From Oikopleura dioica (taxonomy: Eukaryota; Animalia; Chordata): a DNA stretch of 64,000 bases. Every line of letters begins with the position of its first letter. Position 1 is the stretch's first letter. The translations under genes and the position numbers were made by a program. Positions 3,771-50,939 of the stretch are shown piece after piece. The notes under the pieces were generated by a model, which saw nothing but the letters and a program-made list of their open reading frames with translations, was not told the origin of the DNA and made no database searches. The stretch lies in the NCBI GenBank assembly GCA_907165135.1, contig OU015566.1:14074001-14138000 (forward strand). Reading direction: 5' to 3'.

Positions 3771-6700
3771 TCATTTAAGATTCTTTCTCGATCTTGTGAT
3801 TTGTTGGAAAATGGCTTTAGCTGGATAAAGATTAAGATTAAGCCCTTTCCAGATTTCCTGCAGCTTCTTCCTCTTACCTTCTATGTCCTCTTCGATATCC
3901 GAGATATGAATTTCGACCTGGAAATCGTCTTCCTGAAGCGTTTCCACTTCCTCCTCCATTTCTATCTCCATATTTTCGACTTCCCCATCTTCATCACCGC
4001 CACGTGTTGTCCTTGTCTCCGCCTCAACTTCAATTCTTTCGCGCTCATCCTCCGAGTGTTCCTCGGAATCTGAAACGGATATTAAAAAGAAAGCCAACAC
4101 TCAAAGGCCAGATTGTCACATTTGAGAGCTAGACAGATCCGAATCCCTGAGTGTCTGGGCTCAGAAAAAAGAGGGTCTGGGAAATTTGAGGAAAGTTATT
4201 TTTTGCTTATCGATCAAATACTGACCTTGAGCATTATTTGGCGCGGCGTTGGCAGGATTGATGAGTGGCTCGGCGATGAGGGGGGTGAATCTCCGTCTGA
4301 TTTGAAAGGTGTTCTTTTACGATTCATAAATGCATATAAAGCGAAATTTCTAACTCTCAATCTTTTCAGCCAATAAGAAGCCTCTATAACTCGGCTAGGC
4401 CAATCAGAAGCGAGCAAAACTCACCAAACAGGTTCGAGCATTTCTGATTGGCTAAGCGTATGGAAACAGGCCTCTGGTTGGCTGAAAAAGCCCAAAAGTC
4501 TTCGAAATAATTTTGAACCGTTCCAAAACAAAGGGCAATTCAAAGTGATGAAAGAAGAAGATCATCATATGCATGGTCAACATGCAAGAAGTAAACAAAG
4601 CGATAAACGCGTTTCTTCGACTGAATAGAATTAATTCTAGCGCGTCTTCTAAGCGAGGGATCCTACCTGGTGTAGATGTGGTTATACATGTAGAAGCCTA
4701 AATGGTACAAGTAGAAGAAGCGGATCCAGTACTTTTTGGTTATGGGCGTGTGGCAGCAGTAGGAGTGGAATTGGTCAGCGATCCAAACGGACAAAATCAC
4801 GTAGAAAGCGATTCTAGCGCTCGTTTCGACAGTGTTCTCCTCAGAACTGATGGAGAAGCTCTCGAAACGCGTTCCTGGAATCTCCAAAGTACTCGGACAT
4901 GATGTCTTCGAGCCCAATAAGCGCTAGAACGGAGCTGGCCACGGCGCCGTAGGGAAAGTGATTGTGAATTGTCAAATTTATGGATGCAAATAAAACCCTC
5001 CTGAATCAAAAAAGGGATGATTTTCAATTGAGTATCCACGCCTGAAGATCGAGGGGACCTTCCGTTAGCACCCGGAACACAAACATGAACACCTGTTTAT
5101 AAGCGAACCTACAGAGTAGATGATGAGAAAACCAACCATGAATCAAAATCACCAAATTAATTCGAATTACCTAAGAAGCATGGCAATCAGCGCCGTAAAG
5201 ACCATACAGGCGATTACAGGCACATAAAGCATTCGTTTCTTGTGACCGCCGTTGAAGACAGTAAACTGGTCCTTAGTTACAGTGTTTCTGATAAAACCGG
5301 TGTTTCCGGAAATCTGCACGATGGAGTCCAAAACGATCCAGTCGTAGCCAAACCACTCGGCCAGCAAAACGCGGCCGAACTTGTCCCAAACAAGTGATTT
5401 GAAGCAGTCGTCTTTGGATGGATCGAGCATCACTTTGATCACTTCTACGTTTCGGGTTTTTCGCGCCTGCTCGGATAAACGGAGGTAGCCATACTCGTGC
5501 GAGAACTCAAAGCGGACTAGGTTGAGGTAGTCGAAGCCAAAGTCGAAGATGTTTCTCATGCTAGAAAGATTATTACAAACGAGTTTGAATCTGCAGCCAT
5601 TTGGAGTCATTTTAGGACGAAATAGGCCTTTCCAAAAATTTCGGAAAAGAAATCGCACCTGAAATAATTGGCCTGATAGTGAAAGGGCCGAGAAGGGTTG
5701 GGAGTGTCGGTGATTACATCCGTCGAAATAGTGATAAGTCGTCTGGATATGTTCTGATAGGGCTGATGCTCCAGTTCGCGGTAGAGAGGACATTGGTTCT
5801 CGATTCTGAAAGGCGGAAATGATGCCCTGCTTAGCGACAGAAAACAAACAAGATGGTTACTGTAACATTCGATTATGCTGCTCTAGAGACAGGCGCGTAC
5901 CTGTATAAATAATCAGAAATAAGCGCTGATCTTCGTCTTCCAATCTCTACCCGCAAAATCGACTCGACGGGGATCTTGCCCTTCAAAGGCAGCAGACAAG
6001 TACTGGTGTTGGGGTATCCGACGTGTGAATAAATAAGAGCCAATGCTGCGCCCAGCGCCTAAAACAGCGAAAATGAACAATAGCTTTTGAAAAATCAACC
6101 CTGCTGCGCGATGAGGTGTCATAAAATTTTACAAGCGCGAAAAAAGAAATGGAAAATTTTTCAATCAAAAAATGAAGAGAGAAATTCTTAAAGAGGCCGC
6201 CTCTTCAAATGACTTTCTCATCGAGTGTTGCCATTTGAATCTTGAGTGCGCATTTTATTTCCAGTAATTAATTCGAAATACGAGCGTCTTTCATTAATAA
6301 AAATTCCCCCCTCCAGCAGCAGAAACTTTCTCTATATTAATTTTTCACCTTTATCAAAACAACAAATTCCAAAAAGCGGCGAAGTCCTTTTTTGCACCAG
6401 CGGGCGTAGCGTTGACAAAATGACTAAAGTGAAGGGTGCGTAACGTATAATTCTCTGTATAATTAATTCCATTCTTTCGAATTGACAATCGCCTACAGGT
6501 AGAGCAAGCTAAAGATATGATAATTGCTCGTTATCGTTTTACAATCTACATCTACCACTAGCTATTTTACAACTTTTCTGAAGCTTTTCTTAGAAATATT
6601 TTTAATTTTTCAAAGAAAAAACCACAATTGGCATCAATTTTTTAAGAAAAGGTTATTTTTCTACCCGAGTTTTGTTGATATATATAAAATAGATTCTGCA

Positions 6701-19996: not shown

Positions 19997-21449
19997 ATGA
20001 AAAATCTTGAAACGTATTTATTGTTGATTTTGACAACCATTTTGTACGGCCATCATTTTTGGTTTGTCAGTGATTCGGGTCTAAGAGACACAGAAATAGA
20101 GTTGTTGAATAGATTTCAACGATTTCTTCCTGGAGAAGAAGCAGTTCTTCCGAAATATCAAACAAGGCAAGACTTGATCTCCAATAACCGTCAAAAGAGC
20201 CTTTTTAGGAGCGACAAATTTCTCATCCCTTTCCTGAATTGGGGCCCGAACAATCAACTCCGGGGCCTACAAGAGTCCCTTATTCTTGCGATAAAGCTCA
20301 ATCGAACACTTTGTGTCCCTTTTTTCTTCAAACATTTCACGGTGAGAGCCCAATTCTAGCTCCAAAAGCGAATGAAGAATTTTTCAGGACTTGAGTTTGT
20401 CGGATGGAGAGGAGCACCTGGTGATTCCGAGATTCAGAATTGATGTTCGAAAGATTCATGAATTGATCACGACTTGTGACGTCCACGAAATCGCCGGCAA
20501 CTGTGGTGGGAAAGTTGATTCCCTGTTGATTGGGAGGGACATTTGCTCTGGCGACATTTGGAGGACGACTGAGGAGACAAGGAAGAGACTTGGGCTGGAA
20601 GCATTCATGGAGGAGGAGAGCTGCAGAGGAGTTAAGGGCCTCCCGACGTATCCAGAGGAGAAGAAGATTGTCCGAACCTTGTCGAGTGACAAAAAATGGC
20701 TCGAGGAGTACTACCCTGGGGACGAAAGATGCGCAGTGATTGCCTATCCTTACACTCTCTTCCCAAACTTCCACGGCCAAATCGAACGATTTTTAAGAAA
20801 CAGAAAAGGTGCACAAGGCGAGATCTCGGACTTCGACGCTGAAATTTTCTCCGACGTCATCAATTACGTCGCTCGGCCGCAATTTATGAGAGCGCTGGTA
20901 GACGACTTCGTAAAAGAAAAGCTCTTCGAAGGAAGATTTATCGCCCTTCATTACCGATTTGATGATGTGGACTATTTGTCAAGATGCAGCACCGAAGACC
21001 CGTATAAGATTTGCGACGATTTGATGAAGATGAAGGGGAATATGACCGAATCGGCGGAGATCTTCGTCAATTATCTTGAAAAGCTCAGATCTGAGGACGT
21101 TCCCATAAAAGCTGTTTACTTGGCTTCCCCACCACAAGAAGTCCAGATCAATTTCTCGATCAAAGACGCGCTTCGTCGACGATTTCCAAATCAACAAGTC
21201 GTTTTTCTCGATTCAAAAGACATCGAGCCTTTCTACAATCGACTAGCGAATGTGCCAACTGGTCTGAAAGGAGATGTCATGTCTTCGATTGAGCAAGAAG
21301 TCTGTCTAAGAGCTAGAGTATTCTTGAGAGCGAGGCCGTCTTCTTGGTCGAGCAATGTTCATATCCAACGTGTTGCTGATCCTGAAACAAGGAAGTTTGT
21401 CAAAGATGATCGATTATTACTCGATGTTCTCACTGGAAAATCAACTTGA
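19997..21449 (+). CDS. Type II membrane GDP-fucose O-fucosyltransferase-like glycosyltransferase
   Basis: N-terminal TM; NWGPNNQLRGLQESLILAIKLNRTLCVP; FIALHYR; VYLAS; IEQEVCLRARVFLRARPSSWSSNV resemble POFUT1/2-type (O-FucT) blocks. Confidence 0.75.
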
Positions 21450-21599
21450 ATGAGCGATACTGATACTTTCAACCCTTTTAAATACGCTCTATTATTTCGC
21501 TTTCTGGGATTATATACCCCACTTTCACTGTCCTGTAAATAAAATCTCCATGTTCTCGATTACCGGTCGGTTCTTTTTGGTAAAGAGTTAGCAAAAGCT

Positions 21600-21682
21600 T
21601 GACAAGAGTGGGATTCGAACCCACGCCCTCAAAGAGGACTGCGACCTGAACGCAGCGCCTTAGACCACTCGGCCATCTTGCC
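21600..21682 (-). tRNA. tRNA-Leu-CAG: tRNA-Leu (anticodon CAG)
   Basis: GGCAAGATGGCCGAGTGGTCTAAGGCGCTGCGTTCAGGTCGCAGTCCTCTTTGAGGGCGTGGGTTCGAATCCCACTCTTGTCA: cloverleaf with long variable arm, intact A/B boxes. Confidence 0.97.
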
Positions 21683-22015
21683 ACGGAGGTGCCGGCGACA
21701 AAAGGCACATACAAAAACCAGCTTCATTTTCAGTGATTTTTCGATTCCGGCTTCAGAGTAAGAACTCCAAGAGTAAGCCAAATAACGGGTGGTAGACTCA
21801 GCAGAATCAATCAAGATTGCAATCTGCCAAATCATCCTGCAGCTTTCGCTGGCAGCAGCCGTCTGTAATCAGCCCCAGTCAATCCCAATGTCGCCCGTCG
21901 CCACCCTCTCGCACCTGTCTTTCCAAATAAATACCATTCCCTTTTCCCAGAAAAATCAAATCACTTCTCAAAACAAACAAATCAACAAGCAAAAAAAACT
22001 CCTCAAGAAAAAAAA

Positions 22016-22753
22016 ATGACTTCCTCAACCGACAGCTTCCAAAACGTCGCCTTTGAGCTTCCCCAAGTCGACCTCAGCGATTTGGACTTTCTCGCCGGGC
22101 TCATTTCTCCGTCAACTGTTTCTGAGCAGAGCTATTCTAGTCCCAACTTCGCTCCTAGCTCTGGATACAACTCGGCCGCCTCAGACTTTCCCGTCCACTA
22201 TTCTTCCTCTTCATCTCCCTCTTCTTCTAACAGCTCTCCTGGAAACCCCATCCCATCAGCAGCTCCAGTCAACGCTTCCTACTATCACTACCCATCCCCA
22301 GCTCCTTCTCCCCACTACAGCCCCGAGCAATTCTACCCCCAGCAACAGTACTTCTTTCCTTCTACCTTCTCTCCGACCGACTTCAATCCCCAAGCCCTCC
22401 AATCCTCGATGAACTCCTACCTCAGCACTCCTCCAAGCTTCCACCCTTCTCCCCAACCCCAGCCGCTCAAAATCGCCAAATCAGCTTTGAAAAACCGCCG
22501 TGCTTCCCGCTCCAAGTGTCCCTGCTTGAAATGCTGCCACGCCCGCGCCAACCAAATTCCTTCTCCGACTTACCACGCTTGCGTCGTCAAAAACTGCCAG
22601 AAAAGCTACACTCGGCCTGCTCATCTTCGAAGCCACCTGAAATCGCACGATTCTGACGGGCAATTGAAATGCGATCTTTGCTGCGCCAACTTTCCGACTT
22701 CCGATTTGCTGATTTCGCACATGTTTGAGCATGGAAAGCAAATGAAACTGTAA
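22016..22753 (+). CDS. Intronless Sp/KLF-like C2H2 zinc-finger protein with only two fingers
   Basis: S/P/Y-rich N-terminus, CPCLKC (buttonhead-box-like), HACVVKNCQKSYTRPAHLRSHLKSH, second finger CDLC...HMFEH. Confidence 0.8.
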   Translation: MTSSTDSFQNVAFELPQVDLSDLDFLAGLISPSTVSEQSYSSPNFAPSSGYNSAASDFPVHYSSSSSPSSSNSSPGNPIPSAAPVNASYYHYPSPAPSPHYSPEQFYPQQQYFFPSTFSPTDFNPQALQSSMNSYLSTPPSFHPSPQPQPLKIAKSALKNRRASRSKCPCLKCCHARANQIPSPTYHACVVKNCQKSYTRPAHLRSHLKSHDSDGQLKCDLCCANFPTSDLLISHMFEHGKQMKL

Positions 22754-23124
22754 AAAATTGAAACTTATCTGTACATAATTACAAACCCAAATATATTAAA
22801 AATGTTCGAAAATCGCCAAGCAAATATAGTTGCCTCCTTTGAATGATATAGCAAATGGACTACCGGTAAATGCCGTATTTAATATGCTTTTGAAAGGATC
22901 TTGCGCTAATATTTACCTCTGTACTCTTTAAAAGACAGTTCGTATTTTCTTGAACTCTTTGCCCCTGGAAGTAGAACGTAATAAATCGAAAGTTTTTGAT
23001 GGCGAAGACAGATGAAGCGTTCGAAGGTGAGTCATTCATTTCCTCTTCAGTTCGACTGATGTTATTTTTAACAGTAAGATAGTGTTAAGTATACACTGTT
23101 TAAGATTCGTATAATACTATTCGT

Positions 23125-23384
23125 ATAATAGATTCGTTTTTTATTGGGGACGCGTTTCGGCTACAAAAGTGCCTTCATCAGCCCTAGAACAGAAATTAAC
23201 TTTAGTGCTCAGAAAAAGGAAGAATACTCTTACCTAAGAGTGGGCAGTTTCGAATGAGAACGAAAGTTCTGAAAACAGAAAATGAAAATTCGCTTTCGCG
23301 GCAGCCTGCAGGTGAATGGAGCGGCAGATAATGAAGGCACTTTTGTAGCCGAAACGCGTCCCCAATAAACAACGAATTTATTAT
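23125..23384. mobile_element. Inverted-repeat element (54-bp arms) carrying a hammerhead motif; Penelope/retrozyme-like remnant
   Basis: 23125-23178 is the reverse complement of 23331-23384 with few mismatches. Confidence 0.7.
23146..23184 (-). ncRNA. Minimal type I hammerhead ribozyme
   Basis: GGG-CUGAUGA-A-GGCACUUUUGUAGCC-GAAA-CGCG-UC/CCC: complete catalytic core, stem II, palindromic mini stem III, GUC cleavage triplet, GGG/CCC stem I. Confidence 0.75.
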
Positions 23385-23449
23385 TTTGAGAGGTCAACTA
23401 TAAGACTATGTATAAATCTCTCTATTCAAAAGGCGATTTGCGCGCCCAT

Positions 23450-25271
23450 GAAACAGAAGAAAACAAGGAAGAGAAAAAAGAAAATCAGCCAGTTCCAGAA
23501 AGTTCCAGGCAAAAAGTCACGAAGAGAAAAAAAATTTTGGCCATGATATATAAATTTCAAGACTAGAAAAAGCAGCAAATCGTTATTGACATACATTTTT
23601 ATTGGTGTCGTTGCTGAGGCTAGAATCGCACATGGTTTTTTCACCTCCATCACTGGCCCCACTCTTCCCAGTCTAGCGTTCAACTGCGACGTTTCTGTTG
23701 GTGATGTCTCGTCTGTTTTTGCGTGGAGAGGGCTTGGAAATGTAGTCGGAGCGATTGCCGCTGGAATAATTTTACCAAGGCTTTCATCAGGAAAGGTCAA
23801 ATTGCTGACTATTGGTGGCACGCTACTCGTCAACGGGCTCTTTATCGCCGTCATTCCGCTCTTGACAGAACTTTGGTTGCTCGGAACTGTCGCCTTTGCT
23901 ACTACTTTAACGAGCTCCTATTTCACAACTGGCTTGGAATCGCTTGTGTTGAATATTTTCGGCGCTGAAGGATCCGCTTGGGTCGTCGCGATCTACCACG
24001 CGTTCTTTACTATTGGAGGCTTTTTGGCACCCCTGCTTGTTCAAGTTTTTAAGTCAAGTGATCCTCTCAAGGAATGTGTCACCAACGCCGACAATTTCAC
24101 CGGCTACGACAAAAACTACACGTCAGGAAATCACTTCGACCTCAGTAAGAAAAACCAGTTCCGTATTATCATCCATCCTTTTAAAGTCGACGAGGATATT
24201 CTCCCACCATATTTGATCGTTGGCGTGATTGTTCTCGCAAGTGGAATATTCACCTGTGTTTGTGCTGTTTGGAAGCTCATTGAAAAACTGACAACTGCGA
24301 AACATGATGAGGTTTGTTTCATCATCTGTGTAGTTATGAAAGAGTAGGTTGATATGCGCGGCGAAGATCCTTGGAGAAAACTCCTGGTGTTTTTCATGTT
24401 CACGATGTTTATTCATGCTTGTAGCGCGAACACCGATACGATCTTCCAGGTAAAGAAAAAGAAAACAAAAACTAGAGCCAACAGTGTGCTTTAGTCGTAC
24501 ATCTACTACTACGCACTATGCTCGAAAGCCTTCGACTGGGATCCCGTAAAAGCCAATTACCTTAACATGATCTTCTGGGCTGCCTTGACTGCCGGGAGAT
24601 TCATCGGAACCTACACCACTCGAAAGATTAGACCGACCTTTTTGCTCTTGATCTACTTCATTGGTTCAACAATCGGAATCAGGAAAGGCAAGAAAATCAT
24701 ATACATCTAATTTAAGAGGATTTTCTCTATGCATCGATAAGTTTGATCCTCGGAGTCGATGGCAATATCGGTGGATCTTCAAACGACGCAATTTTATACA
24801 CAGCTACTGTCCTGTTCGGAGTCTTCTGTGCTCTTTTCTACGGTAGCTCGACGAGTCTCTGCAACAGCTTCACGAATCTTGGCCTCACCTACGTCTTTAT
24901 CAACAATCTCGGCGCCTCGGTCGGCACTATGATTGCTCCAACAATCACTGGTTAGTGATTGACCAAGCTCAACTCTTGGTAGTTTTAATTTAGGAAAGCA
25001 CATCGAAGACTCGCCAATTTCATTCGCTTGGGCATGTTTGGTGTTCTGCTTGGGCGTTCTTTTCTTCGAACTGTTTGTTCATCTTGAAGGATTCAGAATA
25101 ATGGATCGTATTTCCTACTCCACTTCTCTCAAGGAACGGTCGATGAGAATTCCCGGACACAGGCTCATACCTTTCGAACCTCAAATCGACCTCCAAAAAG
25201 GCATTCTTACACTGTTCGTTTCCAGTAGAAGGCTTTGGAGAAACAGCGCAGATAAGACCAGAATCTACTGA
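23450..25271 (+). CDS. MFS transporter, MFSD4A/B (NaGLT1)-like; start approximate
   Basis: SITGPTLPSLA, RGLGNVVGAIAAG, HAFFTIGGFLAPLL, YLNMIFWAALTAGRFIG and about 12 hydrophobic segments over several exons. Confidence 0.8.
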
Positions 25272-49780: not shown

Positions 49781-50939
49781 TCACAATTTTGCTTTGAGCA
49801 TGGCATCGAGCTTTTCAGCGTCGTTGGCGAATCGGACGATGCCATTGGAGAGGAGATCGACGGCGCAAGGGTCGGTGTTGTGTTCCCATCGGAAGGCCGC
49901 TTCGTCCAAGGATACCTTATCCTGAAAAAGCTGTCAAAAGAGAATCGCTAGAAGCTCGACTGACCTTGGAAGAGTTCTTGGCCTCTTCAGAGCATAAGTT
50001 TCTTGGCAGGTTGTTCGTCTCGCCATCAGCCTTCAAGTTCTCCAGCAAAGAAGGAGCAATGGTCAGCAAATCGCAGCCAGCAAGAGCCTTGATTTGTCCA
50101 ACATTTCTGAAGGAGGCGCCCATGACCTGGGTGTTGTAGCCGTGCTTCTTGTAGTAGTTGAAGATGTCTCGGACGGAAACTACTCCTGGGTCTTCTTCGG
50201 AAGGACCGTCTTTCGCGAAGTTGCCCTTTTTCACATGCCAGTCGAAGATTCGACCGACAAAGGGGGAGATAAGCGTCACTCCAGCTTCGGCACAGGCGAC
50301 TGCTTGGGCGAAACTAATGAATATTGTTGAAAAGGGGACGTAATCAAGCTGACTTACGAGAAAAGAAGAGTCAGGTTGCAGTGGATTCCCTCTTGCTCTA
50401 GTTCTTTGGCGGCTTGAATACCTTCCCAGGTTGAAGCGATTTTGATGAGGATTCGTTCTTTGCCTGAAAAAGATGGTAAACAGGATCTTTATCTGGTCAG
50501 ATAACGTACCGACTCCTCGCTCTTTGAACAAATTGATGATTCGGTGAGCTCGTTTGAGAGTCTCTGCTTTGTTGTAGCTCAATCGAGCGTCACATTCGAC
50601 GGAGATTCTTCCTGGAATCTTCTCCAAAACTTGATTTCCAACAGCGACAAAAAGGTGGTCAGCAGCAATGGCGAGTTTGTCATCTCCTTCGGCTTTCTTA
50701 GCGTATTCGGCAGCGGCTTCGATGTGCTTATCATATCCTTAAAAGGTTGAAAAGGAGAAGGGAAGATAGACATTACCTTCAACCTTCATGGCAGCGAGAA
50801 CAAGTGAAGGATTGGTAGTAGCGTCGGTGGGCTTGTAAAGATCCATGGCAGAGAAATCGGCAGTGTCGGCAACAACAGTGGTCAAAGCCTTCAGGCTTTC
50901 CAAAGCGTTTTCGTGTCGGGTCTTCTTAGTTGGGGTCAT
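49781..50939 (-). CDS. TALDO1: Transaldolase
   Basis: [57 protein letters not shown]. Confidence 0.97.

Follow-up and report, generated by a model that had tools for sequence, protein, structure and literature searches.

A Penelope-Type Minimal Hammerhead Motif in a Probable Relic Retroelement Insertion of Oikopleura dioica

Introduction

What is a 39-nt string with the makings of a hammerhead ribozyme doing beside an MFS transporter gene of Oikopleura dioica, and does it act there? The question arises from a 64,000-nucleotide stretch of DNA (the window; coordinates count from its first letter), in which the string lies on the minus strand and is shared in part with an inverted copy close by. 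It could be the ribozyme of a mobile element, a chance likeness or a component of local regulation.

Minimal type I hammerheads are carried by the pLTRs of Penelope-like elements (PLEs) throughout the metazoans, cnidarians to vertebrates, and number in the thousands in a genome (Cervera and De la Pena, 2014; PMC4209133). Beyond what the search descriptor for them demands, PLE minimal hammerheads have a base between positions 9 and 10.1, a G10.1-C11.1 pair, a palindrome made up of positions 15.2-16.2 and loop 3, and membership in genomic families, and their helix I is short (PMC4209133). Most occur singly and dispersed, which is put down to truncation of PLEs, and dual motifs 100-700 bp apart on opposite strands also occur (PMC4209133). 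Single motifs gave no detectable cleavage in vitro, while dimers and constructs with an extended helix III cleave weakly (PMC4209133). In the Penelope variant of D. virilis, helix II has a bulged base, the insert in helix III is a 2-nt palindrome and helix I is 2 bp long (PMC4209133). Metazoan non-LTR retrozymes are head-to-tail tandems with canonical hammerheads and abundant circular RNA (Cervera and De la Pena, 2020; PMC7229834), and a recent preprint derives retrozymes from PLE pLTRs (Li et al., 2026; 10.64898/2026.07.22.740005). An extra A after A9 is also found in the hammerhead of the viroid CChMVd (De la Pena and Flores, 2001, cited in PMC4209133).

Genomic Setting

The window is eukaryotic, with short interrupted ORFs and a GC content of about 42%, and the public runs that contain it come from one species, with traces in marine and biofilm metagenomes. 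Among window ORFs of at least 220 aa there were no transposon proteins; the Membralin, fucosyltransferase and transaldolase matches listed in Table 1 are ordinary host genes. A search for RT or GIY-YIG domains was likewise negative, both in the window ORFs of at least 220 aa and in the ORFs adjoining the element.

Table 1. Features of the hammerhead motif, the repeated unit and its surroundings.
Feature	Position	Strand	Remarks
Minimal type I hammerhead motif	23184->23146	-	GGG-CUGAUGA-A-GGC(ACUUUUGUA)GCC-GAAA-C-GC-G-UC/CCC; direct sequence reading
5' strand of helix I, GGG	23184-23182	-	Direct reading
Core box CUGAUGA	23181-23175	-	Direct reading
Inserted A following A9	23174	-	Direct reading
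Helix II GGC/GCC	23173-23171 + 23161-23159	-	Encloses loop ACUUUUGUA
GAAA box	23158-23155	-	Direct reading
Helix III palindrome ACGCGU	23155-23150	-	Direct reading; conserved core U at 23150
C17	23149	-	Predicted cut between 23149 and 23148
3' strand of helix I, CCC(C)	23148-23146	-	Direct reading
AAUAAA hexamer, left arm	23140-23145	-	Just 3' of predicted cleavage site; faces outward (leftward)
Longer copy of repeated unit	23125..23330	-	Read 23330->23125; leader of ~120-145 nt, hammerhead motif, A/U-rich tail; 5' limit somewhere from 23304 to 23330
Dead twin, inverted 5'-truncated partial copy	23331..23406	+	Begins at core AUGA; lacks C3-U4-G5 and the 5' strand of helix I
Left inverted-repeat arm	23125..23178		Repeat search of window
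Right inverted-repeat arm	23331..23384		Repeat search of window
AAUAAA hexamer of twin	23364..23369	+	Faces outward (rightward), toward MFS gene; between upstream zinc-finger ORF and MFS ORF
~14-nt tandem repeat (ATTCGTATAATAnn)	23105/23106..23133		Outer end of left copy; length differs among contigs
tRNA-Leu(CAG)	21599-21683	-	Rfam 57.4 bits and ARAGORN; 1.4 kb upstream of element; only one in window
Zinc-finger ORF	22016-22753		Upstream of element; any plus-strand read-through toward MFS ORF would start here
MFS ORF	23586-24347		MFS_1, E = 8.7e-7
Membralin exon	5167-5847	-	E = 1.4e-21
GDP-fucose protein O-fucosyltransferase exon	20391-21449	+	E = 6.1e-07, under curated cut-off
Transaldolase exon	49917-50627	-	E = 3.9e-40

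Anatomy of the Minus-Strand Motif

Read on the minus strand, the motif holds the complete conserved hammerhead core, with one A inserted after A9. Helix I is an open stem of 3 bp without a loop, which places the motif in the minimal type. Helix II, written out as GGC(A C UUUU G U [A])GCC with the bulged A in brackets, consists of 3 + 2 bp around a bulge; its G10.1-C11.1 pair is formed by G 23173 and C 23159, and the inserted A is the unpaired base between positions 9 and 10.1. Positions 15.2-16.2 and loop 3 are palindromic (ACGCGU), and a dimeric helix III of 6 bp is feasible. With all published sequence hallmarks of the PLE minimal hammerheads present, the motif is, as far as its letters can tell, a minimal hammerhead of the PLE type.

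The copy to the right lacks the means to cut. Between the two arms, 54 nt long, 96% complementary and 152 nt apart in the repeat search, a 33-nt core (ATGAAGGC...GTCCCC) is present exactly twice in the window and was absent from 100 shuffles; the twin is identical to the left arm across these 33 nt and 96% identical across the full 54 nt. At 23328-23330, however, it has AUA in place of the required CUG, and the GGG strand is absent. The twin therefore cannot be a ribozyme, since C3-U4-G5 are replaced and helix I has no partner strand. A sequence-only reading of this locus had described the motif base by base, including the core, stem II, ACGCGU, GGG/CCC and the cut site, together with an opposite-orientation copy whose homology breaks off at AUA inside the core; both descriptions were correct, and the inverted partner is indeed a 5'-truncated copy.

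On its outer side the right copy is the more complete of the two. Other genomic copies continue past 23125 with sequence like that of the twin's tail at 23386-23412, as seen by aligning the consensus of their loose ends, so that the right copy has a longer 3' tail, to about 23406; one contig of the second DNA run leaves the window sequence at that position. The left copy instead ends outward in the tandem repeat of about 14 nt, whose length varies: each DNA run has one contig with a 14-nt deletion at 23105, and another contig is without 8 nt at 23052. A search for a target-site duplication gave nothing clear: the best similarity between the flanks (23110-23128 versus 23399-23415, p ~0.02) overlaps the element tail. 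The 64-kb window holds no further copy of the element by blastn and no direct, head-to-tail repeat of the unit, only one unit and an inverted fragment.

Significance of the Motif and Its Look-Alikes

How often such a motif arises by chance was estimated with a purpose-written descriptor, modelled on the published search for minimal hammerheads, that demands CUGAUGA, 0-1 inserted base, a helix II of at least 3 bp starting with G-C, GAAA, a palindromic helix III insert, UH and a helix I of at least 3 bp. The window has one match, the motif itself (23146-23184), compared with a mean of 0.005 per dinucleotide-preserving shuffle, and 2 of 400 shuffles had any. On the scale of one window such a match is rare and significant. 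This chance rate amounts to about one match per 200 windows, and several chance sites are expected in a genome of about 100 Mb. Because a whole genome would still allow several such sites, the motif alone is not decisive, and it is the evidence for a repeat family that decides.

A metagenome scan with the pattern ATGAAGGC-N7-11-GCCGAAACGCGTC returned eight contigs, none of which belongs to the family of the window element: five are GC-rich chance matches, two (L001 and L008) carry type III hammerheads of bacterial type and one (L003) a eukaryote-like minimal pair. A scan of prokaryotic genomes for the 28-nt core of the arms gave no match. The two bacterial-type contigs are near-identical and GC-rich, and their hammerhead (L001:3390-3448, minus strand; L008:944-972, plus strand) is a complete type III form in which A9 is followed by an extra A, helix I has 6 bp and helix II has 4 bp. 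The third contig is AT-rich and comes from another organism; two minimal hammerheads stand there (L003:2083-2583) as a divergent inverted pair, with 159-nt arms that are 77% complementary and 127 nt apart, one of them intact (CUGAUGA-A-GGCGC...GCGCC-GAAAC-GCGUC) and one with a mutated core (CUGAAGAU). The string UGA(G/A)AGGU occurs about 30 nt after the cleavage site in both tails of this pair and in the right-hand tail of the window element.

Rfam proved a blunt tool for motifs of this kind. At the gathering threshold the whole window gave the tRNA-Leu as its sole match. A search with the Rfam hammerhead models had been proposed along with the sequence-only reading, and the motif went unmatched: none of the hammerhead families (RF00163, RF00008, RF02275-7) gave a match at E<=10, whether 701 nt or 61 nt were searched. 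Matches to MIR2670 (0.11) and snoU82P at E<=10 were dismissed, as the likenesses to the hairpin and the UGAUGA string on which they rest are due to chance. As controls, the type III hammerhead of L001, which shares the extra A, scored 34.4 bits on Hammerhead_3 (gathering score 48.5), and the minimal type I-like motif of L003, with the same ACGCGU palindrome, scored 13.1 bits, on the wrong model. Since the L003 motif, the closest control, also scores just about 13 bits, the silence of Rfam is weak evidence either way, and its hammerhead models appear poorly suited to minimal variants.

A Multi-Copy Family With a Common 3' End

For two DNA runs (X1 and X2) of this species, Logan contigs were aligned to 22600-23900 at 80% likeness. 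Expressed as sums of assembler word depth, which are not copy numbers, contig depth was about 80-130 (X1) and 130-280 (X2) in the flanks, rose to 694-1149 and 984-1681 over 23128-23303, or 8-10 times the flanks, and was 206-271 and 721-862 over 23304-23391, or 2-4 times the flanks. By depth, the core unit measures about 180 bp. The loose ends of the contigs were as uneven as their depth: an outer end common to copies lies at 23125/23128, and the inner ends fall at different places, 23268, 23304 and 23328. On the minus strand, a common 3' end with ragged 5' ends is the signature of multi-copy, 5'-truncated retrocopies.

The inverted structure itself is not peculiar to one data set. Error-free contigs in two runs bridge both junctions between arm and unique flank (22986-23169 and 23340-23665), so the structure stands in independent runs, of which one may be the source of the assembly. 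Another copy runs past 23328 with 12 nt that are the exact reverse strand of the spacer; from this match, head-to-head junctions with other break points seem to occur elsewhere in the genome.

Variation within the family is unevenly placed. The window copy departs from the majority of the family at 23188, 23205, 23206, 23224, 23231, 23244 and 23247, and of the best-supported 40 of 114 base differences none lies in the 39-nt motif and 11 lie in the next 80 nt (23188-23266). One frequent change does fall inside the motif, a 1-nt deletion at 23162. With it helix II loses its bulged A, which would turn GGCAC-UUUU-GU[A]GCC into a perfect 5-bp helix and take the folding energy from -3.7 to -7.5 kcal/mol. 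The deletion is compatible with a hammerhead structure; it is no test of covariation. A high-depth contig (467 in X1) joins 23184 straight to 23270. This junction points to a subfamily, about 95 nt long, in which an internal deletion has removed most of the leader and spared the hammerhead.

Folding and Transcription

Helix III cannot close in a monomer, because its loop would have only 2 nt. Folded as a dimer, a double hammerhead has -23.5 kcal/mol, not far from the dimer's minimum free energy of -26.4 kcal/mol, and in thermodynamic folds of the monomer, the 180-nt unit and the tandem dimer the hammerhead is not the minimum-energy structure. Such folding is uninformative on the hammerhead, however, since the energy model ignores the tertiary core. 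Minus-strand RNA that spans both arms would form a 54-bp hairpin of -120.4 kcal/mol (z = -11.6), which buries everything from AUGA through the tail.

Raw reads of two oligo-dT RNA runs, about 1.5-1.8 billion letters from each, left the element at zero depth at 80% likeness, in libraries that would miss small, circular or non-polyadenylated RNA, and no RNA runs are listed as containing the stretch. The sole RNA reads of the region align at 23436-23523 with a likeness below 90% and depart from the window sequence on either side, at 23449 and 23487. Their source is not this locus but an expressed look-alike at another site that has the same purine-rich stretch.

The sequence-only reading had further suggested that the ribozyme could cleave antisense or read-through transcripts at this site. 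That idea found no support: plus-strand read-through from the zinc-finger ORF toward the MFS ORF would contain nothing of the ribozyme beyond its antisense and the dead twin, and the unclosable helix III of the monomer, the 54-bp hairpin and the zero depth in both oligo-dT runs also speak against it. With a single monomer whose helix III cannot close, an inverted twin that locks it in a hairpin and no transcript seen, the motif is most likely inert at this locus.

Origin of the Element

Taken together, we consider it likely that 23125-23406 is a relic left by the insertion of a short, multi-copy retroelement of the PLE kind, made up of a longer minus-strand copy and a truncated plus-strand copy placed head-to-head. 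The relic would be what heavy 5' truncation has left of a PLE, its 3'-terminal pLTR part, or else a non-autonomous derivative mobilized by PLEs. Its longer copy, running from about 23330 to 23125, would carry the PLE-type minimal type I hammerhead near its 3' end, and the second copy, running from 23331 to 23406 with its 5' end cut inside the ribozyme core, would abut it to produce the 54-nt inverted repeat. Judging from the literature, in the life cycle of the element such motifs would excise its RNA from longer or multimeric transcripts, with two copies paired through the palindromic helix III ACGCGU as a double hammerhead. We infer the PLE ancestry, the mechanism by which the inverted copy formed and the catalytic competence of the dimer. 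An earlier proposal of a non-autonomous Penelope- or retrozyme-like element beside the MFS gene is thus upheld in part: the minimal-hammerhead hallmarks and the short, multi-copy element bear out its Penelope side, while retrozyme status does not stand.

The first reading to be considered was a MITE or other foldback DNA transposon in whose terminal inverted repeats a hammerhead-like string arose by chance and has no role as RNA. A 260-bp unit with 54-nt arms that are 96% complementary, its multiple copies, the lack of an Rfam hammerhead match and a chance rate that leaves several descriptor matches per genome are all as this reading would have them. In a MITE family, however, both arms would be equally deep, whereas depth here is asymmetric, at 8-10 times the flanks over the left arm and spacer and 2-4 times over the right arm, and family contigs stop at 23268, 23304 and 23328, inside the supposed element and not at a second terminal repeat. 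Only 4 and 2 contigs in the two DNA runs fit two places on the stretch. Moreover, the CUG and GGG that complete the motif fall outside the repeat arm yet within the repeated unit, the hallmarks of a PLE minimal hammerhead would all have to be incidental, and no convincing target duplication was found. The MITE reading was rejected on the pattern of depth and loose ends, and we regard it as very unlikely. A SINE-like or satellite-derived family unrelated to PLEs, with a hammerhead-like string that is due to chance or a ribozyme of independent origin, would be in keeping with the lack of PLE protein domains in the window ORFs of at least 220 aa, and the 3' tail of the element, with AAUAAA and short tandem repeats, resembles that of many retroposon families. 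Nevertheless, the extra base after A9, G10.1-C11.1, the palindromic helix III with a 2-nt insert and the short helix I together match the description of a PLE minimal hammerhead. Head-to-head, 5'-truncated partners are, moreover, a known pattern of PLE insertions. This second reading is accordingly an improbable one.

Two further readings give the locus a function. In one, the hammerhead cuts local antisense RNA, or the 54-bp hairpin yields small RNAs that silence the family or regulate the MFS gene. The great stability of the hairpin, a motif that matches the family in a copy whose leader departs from the family majority at several positions, and the position of the element about 200 bp upstream of the MFS ORF at 23586 can be cited in its favor. 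Conversely, the hairpin competes with the ribozyme fold, monomeric minimal hammerheads are without detectable cleavage in vitro (PMC4209133), and the oligo-dT runs, for all their blindness to small, circular or non-polyadenylated RNA, had nothing on the element; a functional locus is, in our judgment, quite improbable. In the other, the head-to-head pairing of an intact with a core-truncated copy is a recurrent, selected arrangement, either as an antisense mask on the ribozyme or as a hairpin that feeds small RNAs silencing the family. Were this true, the same architecture in L003 would reflect function and not the mechanics of insertion, and we hold it to be highly unlikely. The preferred reading remains a relic retroelement of the PLE kind.

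Comparison With Known Hammerhead Elements

Set beside the PLE minimal hammerheads, the window motif shares CUGAUGA and GAAA, the unpaired base between A9 and G10.1, the G10.1-C11.1 pair, a palindromic helix III that needs two copies, a short helix I without loop-loop contacts, a genomic family and an opposite-strand pair. It differs in the lengths of its helices, with a helix II of 3 bp plus 2 bp past the bulge where theirs usually has 6-8 bp and a helix I of 3 bp where theirs has 4-5 bp (2 bp in D. virilis), and also in that no adjoining RT/GIY-YIG ORF was seen and one member of the pair is cut inside the core. The Penelope variant of D. virilis resembles it in the bulged base of helix II and the very short helix I; organism and sequence differ, and in D. 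virilis helix I is abutted by an intron boundary, of which the window element shows no sign.

Likeness to metazoan retrozymes is more general. The window element is, like them, short (150-450 nt), AT-rich and non-coding, with a type I hammerhead, a supposed origin from PLE pLTRs and an enrichment between genes. Unlike retrozymes, which are tandem, have canonical hammerheads with contacts between loops 1 and 2 and give rise to abundant circular RNAs, it consists of one unit and an inverted fragment, its hammerhead is minimal, and no RNA was seen in oligo-dT runs that are blind to circles. Retrozyme status was rejected on the lack of tandem units in the window and on a minimal hammerhead whose open, 3-bp helix I is not canonical. 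With the CChMVd hammerhead the motif shares the extra base between A9 and G10.1, but the viroid hammerhead and that of L001 are of type III, have full helices, are active as monomers and are of unrelated origin. The pair in L003 is alike in that two hammerheads stand head-to-head, a single one intact and the other defective in its core, on an unrelated contig.

Implications

The locus is an ordinary further example of a well-described kind of relic in animal genomes, with no sign of activity here. For annotation, the site is best labeled a Penelope-type minimal-hammerhead repeat and not a regulatory hairpin, a MITE or a microRNA precursor; beyond that it has little importance. Given that the Rfam models missed the window motif and gave that of L003 a chance-level score, descriptor searches are needed for minimal hammerheads. 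Contig depth and loose ends in public runs, for their part, can expose a repeat family and its pattern of truncation without a genome search. If the family proves young and active in this genome, it would provide a convenient set for testing the cleavage of minimal hammerheads in vivo.
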